From positions 1-7,632 of the forward strand of contig NW_021828802.1 of the NCBI RefSeq assembly GCF_006345805.1: a stretch of DNA of 7,632 nucleotides, read 5' to 3'. The stretch comes from Octopus sinensis (taxonomy: Eukaryota). The position numbers and the translations under genes are program-made. How positions within the stretch are numbered: the stretch's first letter is position 1; every line of letters starts with the position of its first letter. The notes beneath the pieces are model-generated. The model did not search any database, was not told where the DNA came from, and saw only the letters and a list, made by a program, of their open reading frames with translations. Positions 1-7,632 of the stretch are shown here, one piece after another.

Positions 1-414
1 GTCTATGTAAATATATGTACTGTGTCGGTGTTTGTATTTCTTAGCAGAGGTGTTTGAATATATTTATCCTGCGGCAGTCTTTGCTGAGGTTGGTATTGTA
101 TCTTGCTGTAGCCAAAACATCATGTGACAGTAGGGGGGAGGAAGCCCCTCGATGACATTCAGGCAGCTGATGATCACATGTGTTATTGCACGGTCAACAT
201 TTACTGTTGTGTATCTTGGTTTGCAATTTAAGGGTTTCACTGTCTCATCTGTTCATTAGATACTCCATAGCTTTCTCCTCTCCTGTTGGGTCACATATAA
301 AAAAATAAAATCCCCCAAAATAACATAGCCTTCAAGACGTGAAATGGTGTACCAATCACAATTTGTTTTAAGGTTGCACTTCAGGTCACACTTCATTTCA
401 AGTTTAAGGGAAAC

Positions 415-715
415 CATCATCATCATTATCATAATCATTGAACATCTGCCTTCCATGCTGGCATGGGTTGGACGGTTTGACAGGAGTTGGCCAGGCAGCA
501 GCTGGCACCAGACTTCTCTATCTGTTTTATTCAGGTTTTTATGGCTGGATGCCCTTCCTAAAACCAATCACCCAGCAGAGTGACCTTTTTTTACATGGCA
601 CAAGCACAGGCGAGGTCAGTTTTGGCAAGGTTCTCACAGTTTGATGCCTTTCCAAATGCCACCACTACACAGTGTGGACTGAATGCTTTTCACATGGCAC
701 CAGTGCTAGCAGGGC
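415..715 (-). mobile_element. RTE-LINE-derived non-autonomous repeat with (GAT)n tail
   Basis: The minus strand has GGAAGGGCATCCAGCC (an RTE/Expander-type motif), ends ...CATGCCAGCATGGAAGGCAGATGTTCAA and then has a degenerate (GAT)n tail (439-415). It includes a diverged internal duplication of about 95 bp. Recognised from memory of cephalopod repeats. Confidence 0.6.
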
Positions 716-1329
716 CACCAAGTGACTTGAAAGACAAGGTCCTTTGAGAAGGGGAGGGACATTGGAGGAGATGATCTTGTGTCAGATGATAAAAGCTTAC
801 ACTGAGACAGAAACAGTTGTTTCAGTAGAGGAGTACATAGTTACACGTTGGGCCATACATTATTGTTTATAGTATAGAGAATTTTTGTGTTCTTGTGTCG
901 GCTGAGGTAGGCTAGTCCTACGCACCTGGGTTCAAAGGAGAGTCAACAGAAAGCGAATGTTTATTGAAGATTCAGTTTGCAGGAACCGAAGGATGTTACA
1001 GACTTCATGCTTTAGCATTTGGTTTGATGTATCTATTTTTTGCATCTGTTCTTTTTACATGTGCTGGTGATATCGTCAGTGATATCAAACTGCCTTTAAA
1101 ACCCTGCCTGGTGGTTACTCTGGCATGGGATCCACGACCTAAACGGAGATTACTTTAGGTTACTTTTTAGTTTATTTTCCCATTTTTAATACTTTAAGAT
1201 GTTGGCTAAAGATTTTTTTACAATAAATTCTTCTGTACTTAGCATTGTAAATGCATTCTTTCAAACTTCTTTCTATTTTAATGATGATAAAACGTTTCCT
1301 GTAGGACTTAGTGAATAATGATCCTGTCT

Positions 1330-1535
1330 ATTATAGGCAGAAAGCCTGAAATTTGTGGGAGGGGCATAGTCGATTACATTGACCCCCATACTCAACTGGT
1401 ACTTAATTTATCAACCCCAAAATAATGAAAGGTAACGTCGACCTCAGTGAAATTTGAACTCAGAACGTAGCGATGAGCGAAATATCGCTAAGCATTTTGT
1501 CCAGAATGCTAATGATTCTGCCAGCTCACCTCCTT
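1330..1535 (-). mobile_element. tRNA-derived SINE, octopus-type
   Basis: The minus strand reads AAGGAGGTGAGCTGGCAGAATCATTAGC (A-box-like, 1522-1508), GAGTTCAAATTTC (B-box-like, 1461-1449), then CCTTTCATTATTTTGGGGTTGATAAATTAAGTACCAGTTGAG, a central domain I recognise from abundant octopus SINEs. The family name is not verified. Confidence 0.75.
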
Positions 1536-1621
1536 GACTTAGAGAATAATGATAAAAAAAACAAAAAAACTGGAATAAAAATAAGCCACGAGTTTTGCAA
1601 CGAAAGAAATGAACCTAAAGT

Positions 1622-1692
1622 ACGATGATGGTAGTGGTGGTGGTGGGTGATGATGATGATGTTGTTGTGTGATGATGATGATGATGATGATG
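1622..1692. repeat. Compound (GAT)n/(GGT)n/(GTT)n microsatellite
   Basis: GATGATGGTAGTGGTGGTGGTGGGTGATGATGATGATGTTGTTGTGTGATGAT... seen directly. It explains the low-complexity ORF 1539-1766. Confidence 0.9.
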
Positions 1693-1931
1693 TAGACTGT
1701 CAAATGTACGAATGGAAAATATTTCAAAGAAGACAAAAAAAAAACGGTCAAATTGGAATTAGTCAAGGGATAGAAATCACGGGAAAACCAGAGTATTTCC
1801 CCCTCATCTGATAAAGTTACCCGGAACTACCTAAGAAAGTTTGTACGTGGACAAACAAATGTTTAGAAATAGCAGTCACGTATTTCGAAATCCGTCAATG
1901 TTTTTTATAAAAGGAAGGACACTATTTACAC

Positions 1932-1946
1932 CACACACACACACAC
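1932..1946. repeat. (CA)7 microsatellite
   Basis: Seen directly. Confidence 0.85.
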
Positions 1947-2387
1947 GGGTACAGGCGTTTCACTGCTTGACACCACAAACAAGTATTTTCTATTATAACT
2001 TCTTAGAAACTGAAAGTACCTGTTGTACATGTATATATACAGGGTGTCCCCCACACGAATGTTACCACTTTAGATAATTGTAAGTGGGTGTTTATTAATG
2101 TTACACACGTTCATATCTATGTGTATGCGTAGATATAAGTATATATGAATACATCCCCACTATTAGTACTATTTTGTTAAGCGCATCTAAAGCAGTATGA
2201 CTGTGTCATTTACATTTTGTGAACATGCCAAGTAAAGAAACGGGTAGAAATCATAAAAATGCCTTCAGTGAGTTGTTTATTATCTCACCACGAACCAAAA
2301 GAATACTAACACACTGGTTGTCATTAACAACAAGGTCCACATCAAATCTAATACTTTCTATACAATACAACAAAACATATTACTCAC

Positions 2388-2521
2388 ATAATGTCGTATG
2401 GTGACTTGTATGTTTTAGGTTTGTTTGAATAGATTTTGCTTTTGATCACTGAGGTGGCTTTGCTTCTTTTTTCCTCCTGAAATACTTCTGAACAGTTTTC
2501 GATACGATTCTGCCGTGTCTG
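2388..2521 (-). other. Candidate 134-nt spliced exon of an unidentified minus-strand gene
   Basis: Pyrimidine-rich acceptor CCTGCCGTCTTCTTTCTATCGTTTAAACACAG (ends 2522, NAGNAG) and consensus donor GTGAGT (2387-2382). One frame is open throughout: QTRQNRIENCSEVFQEEKRSKATSVIKSKIYSNKPKTYKSPYDI. The peptide is not recognised. Confidence 0.4.
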
Positions 2522-2971
2522 CTGTGTTTAAACGATAGAAAGAAGACGGCAGGCGATAAAATATATACACAGGAAAATGGAGACGTTAAGAAATAGGTGA
2601 CGATATTAAATAAAGAATATTGATTCACTGTTTGGGTGAATTGTTAGAAAATGAGCATTTTTCGTTGCCTTTTGGAGCTGGCAAACCAGTCTGAGTTGGT
2701 CAGATATAGACTGCTGTTTCCAGACGTTCACTTGTGTCTTTTAGGTGAGTCCTAACCTCTGCCTCAAGGGACGAAGTCAAGAATTGCAGGGGAGCTGGTT
2801 CTGAAAGACTTGAATCGCCTCTCGTAAGTGGAATAGGAAATCTCTTATAATTCCTAATTAATGACTTAATTGTGAGAACTTTAATGTCATTTAATATTAT
2901 TTAATTCATAAAAATGCTGACAATGTCTCTTTGATTTTAAATAAATAATTTCGACAAAGTTTTTGTCTAAA

Positions 2972-2980
2972 TTTCCCGCC
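2972..2980 (+). promoter_or_regulatory. E2F-type site TTTCCCGCC (overlaps a GC-box-like CCCGCCC)
   Basis: Matches the TTTSSCGC consensus exactly and lies 34 bp from the X-box. Confidence 0.4.
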
Positions 2981-3013
2981 CTTTTCTCCACGTTTTTTGT
3001 CATTCAAATTAGC

Positions 3014-3026
3014 GTTGCTAGGCAAC
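3014..3026. promoter_or_regulatory. RFX X-box GTTGCTAGGCAAC
   Basis: Inverted GTTGC/GCAAC half-sites, a high-quality RFX motif, inside a CpG-richer patch with GGGCGG at 3079-3084. Confidence 0.6.
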
Positions 3027-3128
3027 AAATAGAAACAATTGACGGGAAGCGGCAGAAGTTATAGATAGACTCCAGACTGGGCGGTTTGTGTGATACCAGA
3101 CCAGAAATATCACCAGACACCCTTAAGC

Positions 3129-3172
3129 ATGGGTTGTCACAGATGGATTTACCCGTCCGTCTTTTCTACGAG
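3129..3172 (+). CDS. Candidate first coding exon of an unidentified plus-strand gene
   Basis: ATGs at 3129 (MGCHRWIYPSVFST+AG) and 3143 (MDLPVRLFYE, phase 0), then donor GAG|GTATGC at 3173 and an abrupt switch to AT/AC-microsatellite, intron-like DNA. It is about 100-120 bp downstream of the X-box. The product is not recognised. Confidence 0.35.
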
Positions 3173-3314
3173 GTATGCTTATGTGTGTGCAAGAAGGCTA
3201 CGTATAATAATGATGTATATTATATTCCTATATGAATGTATTGGCAATCCTGAGTCGGAAATTATCCAATACCTCAAATATTCCAACATCTTTTGATATT
3301 TCTTTTTTAAACTT

Positions 3315-3412
3315 GTACATATACATGAATAAATGTATACACAAACACACATACATATAATATATATATACACACCTACATTTCTACAGTTATATATTAG
3401 ATATATATATAC
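3315..3412. repeat. Degenerate (TA)n/(CA)n low-complexity tract
   Basis: TACATATACATG...TATACACAAACACACATACATATAATATATATATACACAC...TATATATATACA seen directly. Confidence 0.75.
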
Positions 3413-4079
3413 ATCCTGTGGCATAACTACAGATGAACACCCCATCGACTTTGTTTCCTCTCATAACTTCCAGGAAAATGGATATTTTTAATGAAACTTC
3501 CACTTTCATTCCTAAGAGAAAAGGATGCTCTCAAAAGAAATCCTCTTTTACAAGCTCTTATTTAAATCCCTGTGGATAAATCCCCCAAGAATCTTCTCAG
3601 GCTCTCCATATTTTACAATTATAAAAGAGAAAGAATCGGGGGCCAGGAAGTGGGGCTAAAAATAATCAGAGATTTAAAAAATATTCTTTTTATTTTTTTG
3701 TAACATAATGTGTTTCTGAGGGAAAAAATGAGAAAAAAAAAAGACAAGGAGGGTGGTGTGCTAGAAACAACAGCCAAATCTCCCTTAAATCACACACTTT
3801 TTCCTCGACCCTTACAAAACATTTTGCCAACAAATTTCTTTTTTTTATCGTAATCTGCATCGTTTGAAAGTTATTTCTTTCTAACCAAACTTCATTCAAA
3901 AATACCCATTTTTATACAAAATACCTTTATACACATTATATACCTACAGATACACACATGGTCTTTGCTATGTTTTTAAACACATAAAACTCATAGATGC
4001 ATACTTTTATATAATTTTTACACTTAAACCGCCGCAGGACAATATTTTCAGAGTTGCTTCTTAAAGTGTCCTTCACTTT

Positions 4080-4616
4080 TTGATGATGACGACGATGATG
4101 ATGATGGACGATGATGATGCGATGATGGTGATGACGATATGATGGATGATGATGACGATGATGATGGCGATGATGACGATGATGGTGAGACGATGTGATG
4201 GCGATGATGACGATGATGATGATGACGATGATGATGACATGATGATGGCGATGATGACGATGATGGTGATGACGATGATGACGATGATGATGGTGATGAT
4301 GACGACGATGATGATGATGATGACGATGATGATGGCGATGATGACGATGATGGTGATGACGATGATGATGATGACGACGATGAAGACGACGATGATGATG
4401 ATGATGATGACGACGATGATGATGATGATGATGACGACGACGATGATGATGATGACGACGACCACGACGGCGGAGACGACGACGACGGCGGAGACGGCGG
4501 CGGAGACGACGACGACCACCACGACGACGACGGCGGAGACGGCCACGACGACGACGACGGCGGAGACGACGACGACCACCACGACGACGACGGCGGAGAC
4601 GGCGGCGGTGGTCGTC
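4080..4616. repeat. Long compound trinucleotide satellite (GAT/GAC/GGT/GGC grading to GAC/CAC/GGC-GGA) with higher-order units
   Basis: Seen directly. It accounts for the poly-S, poly-I/V and poly-M/T ORFs 4048-4689, 4073-4582 and 4146-4640. Confidence 0.95.
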
Positions 4617-4691
4617 TGCCTTTTAATGGAGAATCAATGATTATGAAAGTCTCTGCTTTTGGACCAGACATTCCTATACATACATGCATGC

Positions 4692-4694
<3 letters not shown>

Positions 4695-4739
<45 letters not shown>
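4695..4739. repeat. (TA)22 microsatellite followed by degenerate AC/AT tracts to about 4872
   Basis: Seen directly. Confidence 0.95.
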
Positions 4740-4741
<2 letters not shown>

Positions 4742-4896
4742 ACACACTATACACACACAAACATACATACTTATAGCCTTATTTCTATACATACATTCCT
4801 AAATATGTGTATATATATATAAACGCATGTATATATACTGTATATAAATATACACACACACACAAAGAGAGAGTGTTGAGGAATGTTACAACAATA

Positions 4897-4948
4897 AGTG
4901 TGTAGAATGCAATGTATGCGATGCAGGTTCGATTCCCGGGCGAAGCCA
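4897..4948 (+). pseudogene. Degenerate tRNA(Gly)-like fragment or short tRNA-derived retroposon head
   Basis: Perfect B-box GGTTCGATTCC at 4926-4936, continuing CGGGCGAAGCCA (compare the metazoan tRNA-Gly 3' end GGTTCGATTCCCGGCCGATGCA). AGTGTGTAGAATGC at 4897-4910 resembles the D-arm AGTGGTAGAATGC. The anticodon arm is shortened and unrecognisable. An (ACA)n/(AAT)/(AAG)n tail follows. Confidence 0.55.
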
Positions 4949-4949
4949 T

Positions 4950-5012
4950 TTACAACAACAACAATAATAAGAAGAAGAAGATTGAAGTTTAATATTTCTG
5001 GAAATATTTATT
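4950..5012 (-). terminator. Candidate polyadenylation region of the propeller gene
   Basis: On the minus strand, AATAAA at 5012-5007 overlaps the stop codon and ATTAAA lies at 4993-4988, followed by a U/GU-rich stretch (TTCTTCTTCTTATTATTGTTGTTGTTGT). Hexamers like these are common in AT-rich DNA. Confidence 0.35.
4952..4980. repeat. (ACA)n-(AAT)n-(AAG)n compound tail
   Basis: ACAACAACAACAATAATAAGAAGAAGAAG seen directly. Confidence 0.8.
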
Positions 5013-5808
5013 TGTCAAAATAAAAGAAAGCAAAAGATTGAGGTCCAGGAATAATTCCAAAAACCATCAAAGAATTGTCTGAAACATCCAAACCAAGAAC
5101 TTTAAAGACTTCATTATCATCCCCTCTGAGGAGTAAATATTTTGGATTATCTTTTAATCCCCGGATTTCATCATCTTCAGATGTTTCCTCTTCAATATGT
5201 CGAGGTATTTCGTAAATATTGTTTATTGTATCTGTTATATAAACACATTCACCAATTATGGTCAGACGAGGTCTTGGATTATAATATCCCAGACCAATAA
5301 ATAGTTCTTCTATTCTTATCCTCCTCACCAAAGACTTTTCCCTGAACCATTCCACAAAACACAAATATTCCCTCCTCAAAACAACAACAACATCACCAAA
5401 AGATGTGACTCCCACACCATCCACCCCTTCATCTCCCTCAAACCTTCCCCATCTCCCCATCTTCCCACGACACACTTCATCTTTACATTTCCCATCTTTG
5501 ATATCAACCACATCCACATAATAAGGGTCAAAGATGTCGGGGTCTTTGCAATAATAGTAATCCTTGTTGTTTATCCATCTTCTTTGGTATTTCTTGTGTC
5601 TCTCTTCTTGAGTTATGTCTCTAATATAATGACCACCACACACGAGTTGATTGTCGTTGTATTTATAAATCCTGTTGTAGTATTTCTCAGTTCTGATGGT
5701 TTTTAAACGACGGAGATCCCTATCGAAGACCCTCATTTCTCTCCCAAAGGCGACAATGAAACATTCCTCTGTCCACCGACATATGTCCAGTGGTGTCGTT
5801 GTTGTTGT
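5008..5808 (-). CDS. Segment 7: propeller unit 3 to the stop codon
   Basis: ORF 5008-5736 extends 24 codons upstream of its ATG (TTTTTPLDICRWTEECFIVAFGRE, bounded by TGA 5811-5809). ICRW mirrors MCRW in unit 1. Ends ...FAFFYFDK TAA (5010-5008). Confidence 0.75.
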   Translation of the reverse strand, partial: TTTTTPLDICRWTEECFIVAFGREMRVFDRDLRRLKTIRTEKYYNRIYKYNDNQLVCGGHYIRDITQEERHKKYQRRWINNKDYYYCKDPDIFDPYYVDVVDIKDGKCKDEVCRGKMGRWGRFEGDEGVDGVGVTSFGDVVVVLRREYLCFVEWFREKSLVRRIRIEELFIGLGYYNPRPRLTIIGECVYITDTINNIYEIPRHIEEETSEDDEIRGLKDNPKYLLLRGDDNEVFKVLGLDVSDNSLMVFGIIPGPQSFAFFYFDK

Positions 5809-7632
5809 TCATGTTGAAGTATGTCCATGTTGTTGTTGTTGTTGTTCTGATTAATGTGACACTTTCTCGAAACATCAACACACTCACATTCTCATCTAAC
5901 TTAATTAGTTTACTGTCCGGTCCCTAATGTCCAACAAATCATAATCAACAGGTTCCTCGAATGCAGGAATGGAAAAAGGGACCATTGCTGTCCTATATGG
6001 AAGTCTCCTCACTGATATTTCATCAATTCCTGAATTATTAATCTCCGCTATGTAATTACCACATCTCACCTTTAATCTACCTTTACCAATTATTTCACCT
6101 GATTTACCTCTTCTTCTTCCTCCTCCATCTCCATCTCCTCCTCTGTATTCCAATTTATTAATTAATTCATTACTGAATATTTCCTTGTTCGTTTCAGATG
6201 TAATGGAAGGGAAACGAAGACCAGAATCAAGATTTAATGACGACACAGATTCCAGAATGTTCACTTGGTCCCCATCAATCTTTATGCAATGACATTCAAT
6301 CAATTCATTATGTACACACCAGTAAATACCCCCACTTTTCTCCATATTACACCATAAGGGATGAGACTCGACCAAACTTGAGATGTCTGCAAATCTTCTC
6401 CATTCAGTTGAAATATTTCTTTCCTTTTAGGAACCGTGGCCATTATGTGTGATTCTTGTGTAAAACACACACCACCAACTAAACTTGCAACATTTCTGTG
6501 ACATAGCAACTGGCCGTCTTCATCGAATATTTTAACATTTCCATTATTGGCTTTTTCACACACAACTGTCTTTCCTTCCTCAGAGACATCAAAATCTTTT
6601 ACTTGAACAGGACATTCGTCTGTTTGTAAACGAGCAACCGGGAAGCTGTCTCGATTCACCATAAACAACCCTTCAACATACAATTCATTCTCTCCCTTTC
6701 GGGGCTTCCAACAAACCTTGGTCCTTTACAGTCTATACTGGAGAAATCTACTCTATCTTTATAAATTCTTTTATTTAAAAATATTCTCTTGTATTCCCCA
6801 TTCTGGGTCAAACACAAAATGTTTCGATATTCTAATGAACCAAAAATTTCTCCCACTCACCATAAATGTACAAAAAACTGTCATCAATTGTCATCCTGTC
6901 ATCATCACATATAATACTCCATGTAGTGTCTGACTGAATGTAAATATTGACCACCACTGTTGAAGAAAATGATGAATCTCAAGTTGAAGACAATGATGAC
7001 ATCTTCATCAGTAACTTTAATATCCTGGATTATATCAGAATAATCTCCATCTTCTCTTCTCCTTATTAATGGTTCAGGTATGTCTATTTTTTTTATTTCC
7101 TTCACACTCGAATGTATTTCATCAATATCAACAAAATGCAAATGTCTTCCATCTCCCCATTCACTCAAAACCAGTTGATTATTTGATAAAGAAGCCACAC
7201 ATTGATATTTATTTCTCGTTTTGTAAATTACCAACGACAATGGAAATTCCACTTTTAATGTCAACAGTTGGTATTTATTATAATCATAACGATCCCAATT
7301 CGTAATGACCAGTGTGTTTGACTGCCATCGACACATTTTAATATTATCATAAACATTCACTTTGATTGAATCCAATAGGTGACCATCCAATGTGAATATC
7401 TTAATGTTTCCATTCTCCCTGTCCCATCCTGCAATCAGATTATTTTCAGTAAGAACCAAATGATTAATCCTCGCTGGTCTTTTGTCTCCCAAATGTTTAG
7501 GGAGAGGAATATGTCTGGCTTTATCAGAAACTGTCAGGTCCTGTAGATATAAAGTGGAAGACAACATTTCACTGAGAGAAATGTGTCTGGAAAATACATC
7601 CACCAGGTCGATATAATAATTAAGTTGATTAT
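5008..7632 (-). CDS. 5'-truncated, frameshift-interrupted gene (or single large terminal exon) for a multi-beta-propeller protein, NHL/TRIM-C-terminal-like, about 874 aa within the window
   Basis: Manual translation links ORFs 6905-7603, 6656-6856, 6300-6683, 5905-6375 and 5008-5736 through six frameshifts (near 6930, 6845, 6710, 6335, 5923 and 5800). The frame is open from the edge (7630: NQLNYYIDLVDVFSRH...). Recurrent blade-like motifs: NGNIKIFTLDGHLL, IIFFNSGGQYLHSV, ILCLTQNGEYKRI, NGNVKIFDEDGQLL, MRVFDRDLRRL. The family call is by motif resemblance, not a search. A young pseudogene cannot be excluded. Confidence 0.75.
5809..5923 (-). CDS. Segment 6 (absent from the ORF track): GPDSKLIKLDENVSVLMFRESVTLIRTTTTTTWTYFNM
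   Basis: The -1 frame relative to segment 5 opens right after TAG 5926-5924 and bridges the apparent 170-bp gap between the track's ORFs with a beta-rich peptide. Confidence 0.6.
5924..6335 (-). CDS. Segment 5: rest of unit 2, Gly/Arg low-complexity linker, start of unit 3
   Basis: ORF 5905-6375 from GGIYWCVHNELIECHCIKIDGDQVNILESV through GGDGDGGGRRRG and YIAEINNSGIDEISV to PVDYDLLDI. Confidence 0.65.
6336..6715 (-). CDS. Segment 4: linker plus first part of propeller unit 2
   Basis: ORF 6300-6683 extended upstream (CWKPRKGENELYVEG..., bounded by TAA 6728-6726). Contains VKDFDVSEEGKTVVCEKANNGNVKIFDEDGQLL and VGGVCFTQESHIMATVP. Confidence 0.7.
6716..6846 (-). CDS. Segment 3: end of propeller unit 1 (GSLEYRNILCLTQNGEYKRIFLNKRIYKDRVDFSSIDCKGPR)
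   Basis: Part of ORF 6656-6856, in the same frame as segment 1. ILCLTQNGEYKRI matches the IKIFTLDGHLL-type motif. Confidence 0.65.
6847..6930 (-). CDS. Segment 2 (absent from the ORF track): DTTWSIICDDDRMTIDDSFLYIYGEWEK, one propeller blade
   Basis: The +1 frame relative to segment 1 is open until TAG at 6834-6832, while the segment 1 frame has several TGA stops here. The peptide TIDDSFLYIY looks like a blade. Boundaries are approximate. Confidence 0.6.
6931..7632 (-). CDS. Segment 1: end of a helical region plus most of propeller unit 1
   Basis: ORF 6905-7603 extended to the window edge with no stop. Helical-looking LNYYIDLVDVFSRHISLSEMLSSTLYLQDL is followed by beta-strand repeats (HLVLTENNLIAGWD, NIKIFTLDG, MCRWQSNTLVIT, VASLSNNQLVLS, IQDIKVTDEDVIIV). 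The track's last residues (HYMEYYM*) are probably out of frame. Confidence 0.75.

Follow-up and report, generated by a model that had tools for sequence, protein, structure and literature searches.

The TRIM-NHL proteins, among them TRIM71/LIN-41, Brat and TRIM2/3, combine a RING finger, a B-box and a coiled coil with one six-bladed propeller of ~280-320 aa, whereas multi-propeller scaffolds such as DDB1, the IFT-A subunits and the WD40 tandem propellers carry several beta-propellers per chain and are encoded by conserved single-copy genes. Here we analyse a stretch of 7,632 nucleotides from Octopus sinensis (assembly GCF_006345805.1, contig NW_021828802.1, positions 1 to 7,632; the window hereafter). 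By alignment to intact relatives, its minus strand from 7632 to 5008 is the 3' 2.6 kb, corresponding to the last ~874 codons, of one single-exon gene that belongs to a multi-copy octopod family. The family is an architectural variant of the NHL-like propeller proteins, is confined to Octopoda and is undescribed in the literature searched. The window copy is itself unremarkable, one member of a gene cluster that is either broken or mis-assembled, and the interest of the locus lies in the family.

A single-exon octopod gene family

All long open stretches within 5008-7632 lie on the minus strand, and the GC skew is strongly negative throughout. Three-frame translation of the minus strand from 7630 to 5011 gives one protein only after seven frame changes, which delimit eight open segments and lead to a TAA stop whose position is shared by P0001, P0002 and other paralogues (Table 1). 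The gene runs on upstream past 7632. A preliminary description of this DNA, made from the letters alone, had chained five open reading frames (ORFs) by single-base frame changes into one intron-free gene of at least 874 codons. The chaining holds far beyond chance and the codon count is correct for the visible part; the segments number eight, and of the seven changes, where four had been implied, six are of 1 bp and one is of 2 bp.

The chained window protein (880 aa, with X at the junctions) has 42 protein matches, all from Octopus, and the best of these, P0001 and P0002, show 85% amino-acid identity at 100% coverage (E = 0). A single ORF of 3915 bp, free of interruptions and situated on chromosome record OX597841.1 (locus L001), encodes P0001 (Octopus vulgaris, 1304 aa), and this locus aligns with the window end to end at ~95% nucleotide identity; the window is colinear with L001 11256-13915 at 95.2% identity over aligned bases. 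The absence of introns is likewise confirmed: P0001, P0002, P0038, P0033 and P0042 are each one contiguous ORF, and the window gene holds no intron-sized gap, the largest gap relative to the paralogue ORFs being at most 30 bp. Every piece of the window gene is open by itself and Pfam assigns no domain to any of its six raw ORF pieces, as would be seen with separate small genes or chance ORFs, an outcome that the preliminary description had itself raised. That alternative, to which we give virtually no probability, is refuted by the colinear 95% nucleotide match to single ORFs of 3.1-3.9 kb, by the position of the segment junctions inside conserved protein sequence and by the arithmetic of the seven indels, which yields the frame order f2, f0, f2, f1, f0, f2, f1, f0 exactly as observed.

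Full-length members of the family are about 1550-1900 aa long (P0100, 1902 aa; P0044, 1712 aa; P0043, 1625 aa) and consist of a ~170-aa helical N-terminus followed by about five propeller-like modules. The window covers the last three, designated A, B and C. At the sister locus L003, 965 residues lie upstream of the point where the window starts, and these comprise a ~170-aa helical region followed by two propeller-like modules, R1 and R2. A family profile searched against 1.84 billion representative proteins recovered only 33 clusters; the clusters whose species was looked up belong to O. vulgaris, O. sinensis, O. bimaculoides and Argonauta hians and, as judged by this search, the family is restricted to octopods (three Octopus species and Argonauta). 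Members are named "uncharacterized protein LOC..." or "Hypothetical predicted protein" in the databases (e.g. XP_014776406.1, CAI9743080.1), and Pfam places no domain above threshold on full-length relatives. Full-text searches, and those parts of the 2026 O. vulgaris repeat-annotation paper reached by term search, gave no description of the family.

Two observations concern gene models and length variation. At L001 9908-9911 a single frame change parts P0001 from an upstream 465-aa ORF (8517-9914) encoding the N-terminal part of the family protein, so the annotated 1304-aa P0001 probably represents only part of the product of a ~1770-aa gene. In Argonauta hians, P0047 / P0083 have an (ADNTRMV)n repeat at the N-terminus and, between modules B and C, a long (YTPPLQQ)n-like insert rich in proline and glutamine, so the linker at that point tolerates large insertions.

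Table 1. Coordinates of the window gene, its modules, its indels and the duplicated 3' flank. Positions are those of the window; the frame label is f = (7632 - start) mod 3 on the minus strand.
Feature	Position	Strand	Remarks
Module A	6668-7632	-	P0001 aa 420-740; short linker and predicted six-bladed NHL-like propeller
Module B	5933-6667	-	P0001 aa 741-985; nearly invariant core, no confident fold prediction
Module C	5011-5932	-	P0001 aa 986-1304; predicted six-bladed propeller, NHL-like by profile; end ...FAFFYFDK
Open segment 1	7630-6908	-	f2
Open segment 2	about 6915-6835	-	f0
Open segment 3	6856-6659	-	f2
Open segment 4	6725-6303	-	f1
Open segment 5	6426-5908	-	f0
Open segment 6	5923-5723	-	f2
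Open segment 7	5891-5736	-	f1
Open segment 8	5808-5011	-	f0; then TAA stop
TAA stop codon	5010-5008	-	read directly from the sequence; overlaps AATAAA hexamer 5012-5007
Frameshift indel	~6910	-	+1 vs intact paralogue in L001 (nucleotide alignment)
Frameshift indel	~6846	-	-1 vs intact paralogue in L001
Frameshift indel	~6696	-	-1 vs intact paralogue in L001
Frameshift indel	~6332	-	-1 vs intact paralogue in L001
Frameshift indel	~5917	-	-1 vs intact paralogue in L001
Frameshift indel	~5830	-	+2 vs intact paralogue in L001
Frameshift indel	~5796	-	-1 vs intact paralogue in L001
Span with all seven frame-disrupting indels	5796-6910	-	pairwise and four- to six-way nucleotide alignments with intact paralogues
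In-frame 3-bp deletion	~7288	-	vs paralogues
In-frame 30-bp deletion	~5373	-	vs paralogues; within acidic, variable loop of module C
3' flank of duplicated unit	1192-5007	-	megablast vs L003, ~94% identity (gaps counted)

Seven frameshifts in the window copy

As it is written, with seven frameshifts in its reading frame, the window copy is untranslatable and represents either a pseudogene or a gene interrupted by consensus errors, an implication absent from the preliminary description. At a rough probability of 0.55, we favour the reading that most or all of the seven indels are long-read consensus errors and that the real locus is probably an intact gene. The other candidate, a serious one that nonetheless falls short of even odds, is a young true pseudogene, a recent duplicate in which at least one of the seven frameshifts is real and which is no longer fully translated.

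Seven frameshifts together with a 30-bp deletion within 2.6 kb are what such a pseudogene would show, and the window differs from the sister copy L003 by about as many substitutions in coding sequence (2.5%) as in the flank (2.7-3.0%). Other copies of the cluster are broken too, since at least one frame break relative to the full-length architecture is found in each of L003, L004 and L005, and even in L001; the O. vulgaris annotation contains many truncated family models (316-790 aa), and no annotated protein matches the window copy. The composition and placement of the changes speak for errors instead. There are no nonsense substitutions among the 868 codons compared, and in the six-way alignment at least six of the seven frameshift indels are seen in no copy but the window, the gap at ~6696-6698 overlapping a 6-bp in-frame deletion of L003. 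The ratio of frameshifts to private substitutions is 7:12, far above the 0.14-0.2 found for private 1-bp indels in the flanks of L003 and L005, and at a ratio of 0.2 the probability of seven or more is 0.012. The indels are also clustered: all seven lie within the central 1.1 kb, the part in which the copies resemble one another most, and the chance of this under uniform placement is (1115/2622)^7, about 0.0025. Over 732 bp of module B the window and L003 do not differ by any substitution, yet the window has lost 1 bp there. For the pair formed by the window and L003, the ratio of nonsynonymous to synonymous substitution rates (dN/dS, omega) is about 2 in A and C and B shows 0 substitutions over 732 bp, which is the pattern of the family and not that of neutral decay.

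The window's non-coding DNA is equally indel-rich. Across 1.9 kb of flank, with indels polarised by a third copy, private 1-bp indels per substitutions amount to 19/31 in the window (14 of the 19 being deletions), 3/15 in L003 and 6/42 in L005; small indels are thus unusually frequent over the window as a whole. Also on the side of errors, the reference assembly of the closest species, O. vulgaris, is based on Oxford Nanopore Technologies (ONT) R9.4.1 reads, which were assembled by NextDenovo and then polished by HyPo with 10x Illumina and ONT data (PMC10700109). L003 itself has, at the window-equivalent positions 7299-7156, five private frameshifting indels in about 150 bp of module A next to an indel-poor flank, which reflects either poor sequence quality at this spot or genuine decay of L003.

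Several points weigh against consensus errors as the explanation. The error profile of the window's own assembly is one that we infer. In the ONT-based O. vulgaris assembly the five paralogous loci show only one frameshift in the equally repetitive central 1.1 kb, so a general polishing failure in this region is not evident. The window's indels sit outside long homopolymers, and the frame breaks of L001, L003, L004 and L005 count here as well. Multigene families of this kind usually contain pseudogenes. No protein on record is identical to the window translation, exact look-up of the 242-aa terminal ORF gave no record, and an intact version of the window copy was not found, the best local match being 98% over 50 aa. 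A practical point is that, where a long-read assembly of such a cluster shows a chain of frameshifted ORFs, the reads should be checked before the chain is called a pseudogene.

Modules, fold and relation to TRIM-NHL proteins

Modules A and C are predicted to be beta-propellers. In the AlphaFold model of P0002 (mean predicted local distance difference test score, pLDDT, of 55) two confident all-beta domains are present, at residues 181-462 (A) and 710-1028 (C). Module A reaches a pLDDT of 70-88 with 24 strands and module C, reproduced in a second run on the shorter paralogue P0012, a pLDDT of 70-92 with ~25 strands; these counts, taken from the DSSP strings, fit six four-stranded blades. Module B has a pLDDT of ~25 in both runs and is blade-like only over its first 55-137 residues. 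Foldseek searches with the whole model return multi-propeller proteins as top matches (E = 1e-13 to 1e-10, template modelling (TM) scores 0.15-0.19), and module C matches propellers of many kinds (TM-score to target 0.34-0.59), NHL and WD40 types not being separated. The models thus support a propeller fold for A and C and leave the subtype unsettled.

Profile comparison places A and C nearer to NHL than to WD40 propellers. Aligned by HHalign to the NHL domain of P0064 (Acanthosepion pharaonis CAE1315789.1), a cuttlefish RING-B-box-NHL protein and the nearest TRIM-NHL protein by sequence, A scores 97.4% over 208 columns, C 93.1% over 197 columns and B 84.5%, whereas against three WD40 control propellers A scores at most 31% and C about 1% or less. 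Neither module has a Pfam WD40 match. Module B is ambiguous, as it also reaches 81-91% against single WD40 blades, one of which is resembled by a ~55-residue stretch. R1, R2, A and C are mutually related, and the family profile matches P0064 at E = 1e-7 among the 1.84 billion representatives. A profile search of the PDB gave sub-threshold NHL matches only (E = 0.19-3.6), mostly to TRIM71, Brat and TRIM2/3. The Pfam NHL model (PF01436) has no match on the window pieces or close paralogues and stays below threshold on every family member tested, the best being P0049 with 18.5 bits against a cut-off of 20. Taken together, profile similarity suggests that A and C are distant homologues of NHL propellers and may work like them.

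The distant homology of A and C to the NHL domain of P0064 would also suit a different identity, a TRIM-type E3 ligase with its N-terminus beyond 7632, of which the window gene would supply the C-terminal part that recognises the substrate. The upstream sequence of relatives makes this very improbable. The close full-length relatives P0038, P0043, P0044, P0047, P0011 and P0030 all begin with a helical N-terminus, continue with further propeller modules and contain no RING or B-box by Pfam and no Cys/His pattern. The N-terminal family profile scores 0.1% in HHalign against the RING, B-box and coiled coil of P0064, and the 965 upstream residues of the sister copy L003 are likewise helical and propeller-like. 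The only link to an E3 domain that we saw is P0034, a more distant 953-aa model derived from XP_036356076.1, in which ankyrin repeats and a sub-threshold C3HC4 RING precede the family sequence. We rejected this head as support for an E3 identity: it occurs in a single model, and the O. sinensis relative P0060 shares the first family residues of P0034 (...PRFDCKSIMKSHSSKFRP...) with no ankyrin repeat or RING before them, which suggests that the fusion is probably an artefact, a chimeric gene model. The E3 reading appears largely refuted. Because RING, B-box and coiled coil are absent from relatives and the Pfam NHL threshold is not reached, the family protein is, by domain content, not a TRIM-NHL member.

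The preliminary description had anticipated much of this fold and less of the surrounding architecture. Its beta-rich, lineage-specific protein is borne out, as are, in the AlphaFold and Foldseek analyses it had proposed, propeller folds for A and C. Of its roughly three NHL-like propellers, A and C stand, with 24-25 strands and a match to the NHL profile, and B, blade-like only at its start, has no confident fold prediction. In place of the helical segment it had placed at the window edge there is a low-confidence linker. Its TRIM/E3 reading fails, since the full-length relatives continue upstream for ~965 residues lacking RING, B-box or any zinc-binding pattern and contain a helical region and two propeller-like modules where a RING or B-box had been looked for.

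Duplication, selection and comparison with known systems

The family is spread along one chromosome. The O. vulgaris copies that were fetched lie at 6.04, 7.22, 7.81, 10.41 and 10.43 Mb of a 29.2-Mb chromosome, along at least 4.4 Mb of which the family extends, and the five loci are 88-96% identical to the window, none of them containing it. The unit that was duplicated reaches at least 3.8 kb past the stop codon into the 3' flank, which argues that the copies are products of DNA-level segmental duplication and not of retroposition. Window 4609-5372 aligns with L001 as well. The hallmark of a processed pseudogene or retrocopy, homology stopping at mRNA boundaries with a poly(A) tract, is not seen, homology with L003 running on for 3.8 kb beyond the stop. 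A family that is intronless, multi-copy and concentrated on one chromosome, with interspersed repeats in its flanks, could also be carried by a mobile element or consist of retrocopies rather than host genes. We consider this highly improbable in view of the duplicated flank, of the lack of any Pfam match to a reverse transcriptase, transposase or integrase, and of the presence, in three Octopus species, of orthologues with over 90% identity that are located on other chromosomes (clusters 6 and 8). In addition, L001 and L002, both intact, keep long ORFs and across 141 substitutions differ by in-frame indels only, indicating that their frames are under selection.

The sequence beyond the gene is repeat-rich. 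At 4081-4603 lies a trinucleotide microsatellite of ~520 bp that passes gradually from (TGA)n to (GAC)n and has higher-order units of 33 and 60 bp; the ORFs of 164-213 aa that it creates on the two strands (4048-4689) are spurious. A perfect (TA)22 and a (TGA)15 are found at 4695-4739 and 1648-1692, respectively. Within the paralogue-aligned 3' flank, positions 4926-4948 of the plus strand (GGTTCGATTCCCGGGCGAAGCCA) resemble the T-arm and acceptor 3' end of a tRNA. Neither ARAGORN nor Rfam finds an RNA gene in the window or calls a tRNA at this site, which points to a probable fragment of a tRNA-derived short interspersed nuclear element. Two further interspersed repeats lie at 417-573, of which the L001 flanks contain three copies (72-73% identity), and at 3391-3502, of which four copies (83-88% identity) are found downstream of the L001 gene.

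Variability is concentrated in the loops of A and C, and B is conserved. Among 29 close paralogues the variable positions form discrete hot spots; entropy in module A is 0.61 in loops vs 0.23 in strands, the contrast in module C is weaker (0.46 vs 0.38), and module B is almost invariant. We compared dN/dS among six copies in the reading frame of L001. By YN00, omega for A plus C is 1.6-3.5 in 15 of 15 pairs; by NG86, dN/dS is 1.2-2.2 in module A and 1.5-5.8 in module C; and in module B it is 0.4-0.6, at very low divergence. Binomial tests of three pairs against a kappa-weighted neutral expectation gave p = 4e-4, 1e-6 and 2e-3. Weighing against positive selection, a conservative test restricted to private single changes gave p = 0.08, and the six copies behind the signal are non-independent. 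The complete identity of module B between the window and L003 has a probability of about 1e-9 to 1e-8 under flank-like divergence, and against L004 and L005 it differs by 2-5 bp, with adjacent modules and flanks at 2.5-6%. This identity suggests gene conversion between copies or extreme constraint reaching synonymous sites. The overall pattern, drawn from few and non-independent sequences, is consistent with a recognition scaffold bearing diversifying loops.

How such a protein would function can be proposed by analogy. An Octopoda-restricted single-exon gene family has been amplified along one chromosome, and its last three modules, those in the window, place the hypervariable loops of two divergent predicted NHL-like propellers, A and C, around the nearly invariant core B. 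In the manner of NHL propellers, the variable loops would bind RNA or protein ligands that change over time, and the core would carry a function common to all copies. We tentatively suggest that the family may consist of intracellular recognition or scaffold proteins of this kind, a proposal to which we give less than even odds. Neither a signal peptide nor a transmembrane segment nor a known immune signalling domain was seen in the family. A more specific version, which we regard as doubtful, is an octopod intracellular recognition system in which a chromosome-scale cluster of single-exon genes encodes giant proteins of ~five NHL-derived propellers, the loops of two propellers are under positive selection, the core is kept identical by selection or gene conversion, and RNA, viral or transposon products are possible ligands. 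If true, this would be an invertebrate diversified-receptor family built on the NHL fold. If confirmed, a candidate recognition or immune-type family would be added to cephalopod biology, in which the known expansions are those of protocadherin, C2H2 zinc-finger and G-protein-coupled receptor genes.

Compared with described systems, the family shares single features with several. Modules A and C agree with the TRIM-NHL propellers in size and in their 24-25 predicted strands, which would fit six blades. In contrast to the single propeller and RING, B-box and coiled coil of those proteins, the octopod proteins carry ~five tandem propeller-like modules with none of these domains, span 1550-1900 aa in one exon and place an invariant non-NHL core between their last two propellers. 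They resemble DDB1, the IFT-A subunits and the WD40 tandem propellers in having tandem beta-propellers in each chain, but those scaffolds are conserved single-copy genes and A and C show no sequence relation to WD40. A helical head followed by ~five tandem propellers in one exon is an architecture not reported for NHL proteins, and the family is further distinguished by being octopod-only, by having no Pfam domain and by its hypervariable loops set against an invariant core. In its evolutionary pattern, the one aspect to which the likeness extends for a family known here from sequence, it may be likened to the diversified, tandemly amplified recognition families of invertebrates, with which it shares lineage restriction, many tandem or segmental copies on one chromosome, dN > dS at scaffold loops beside an invariant part, and many broken copies.

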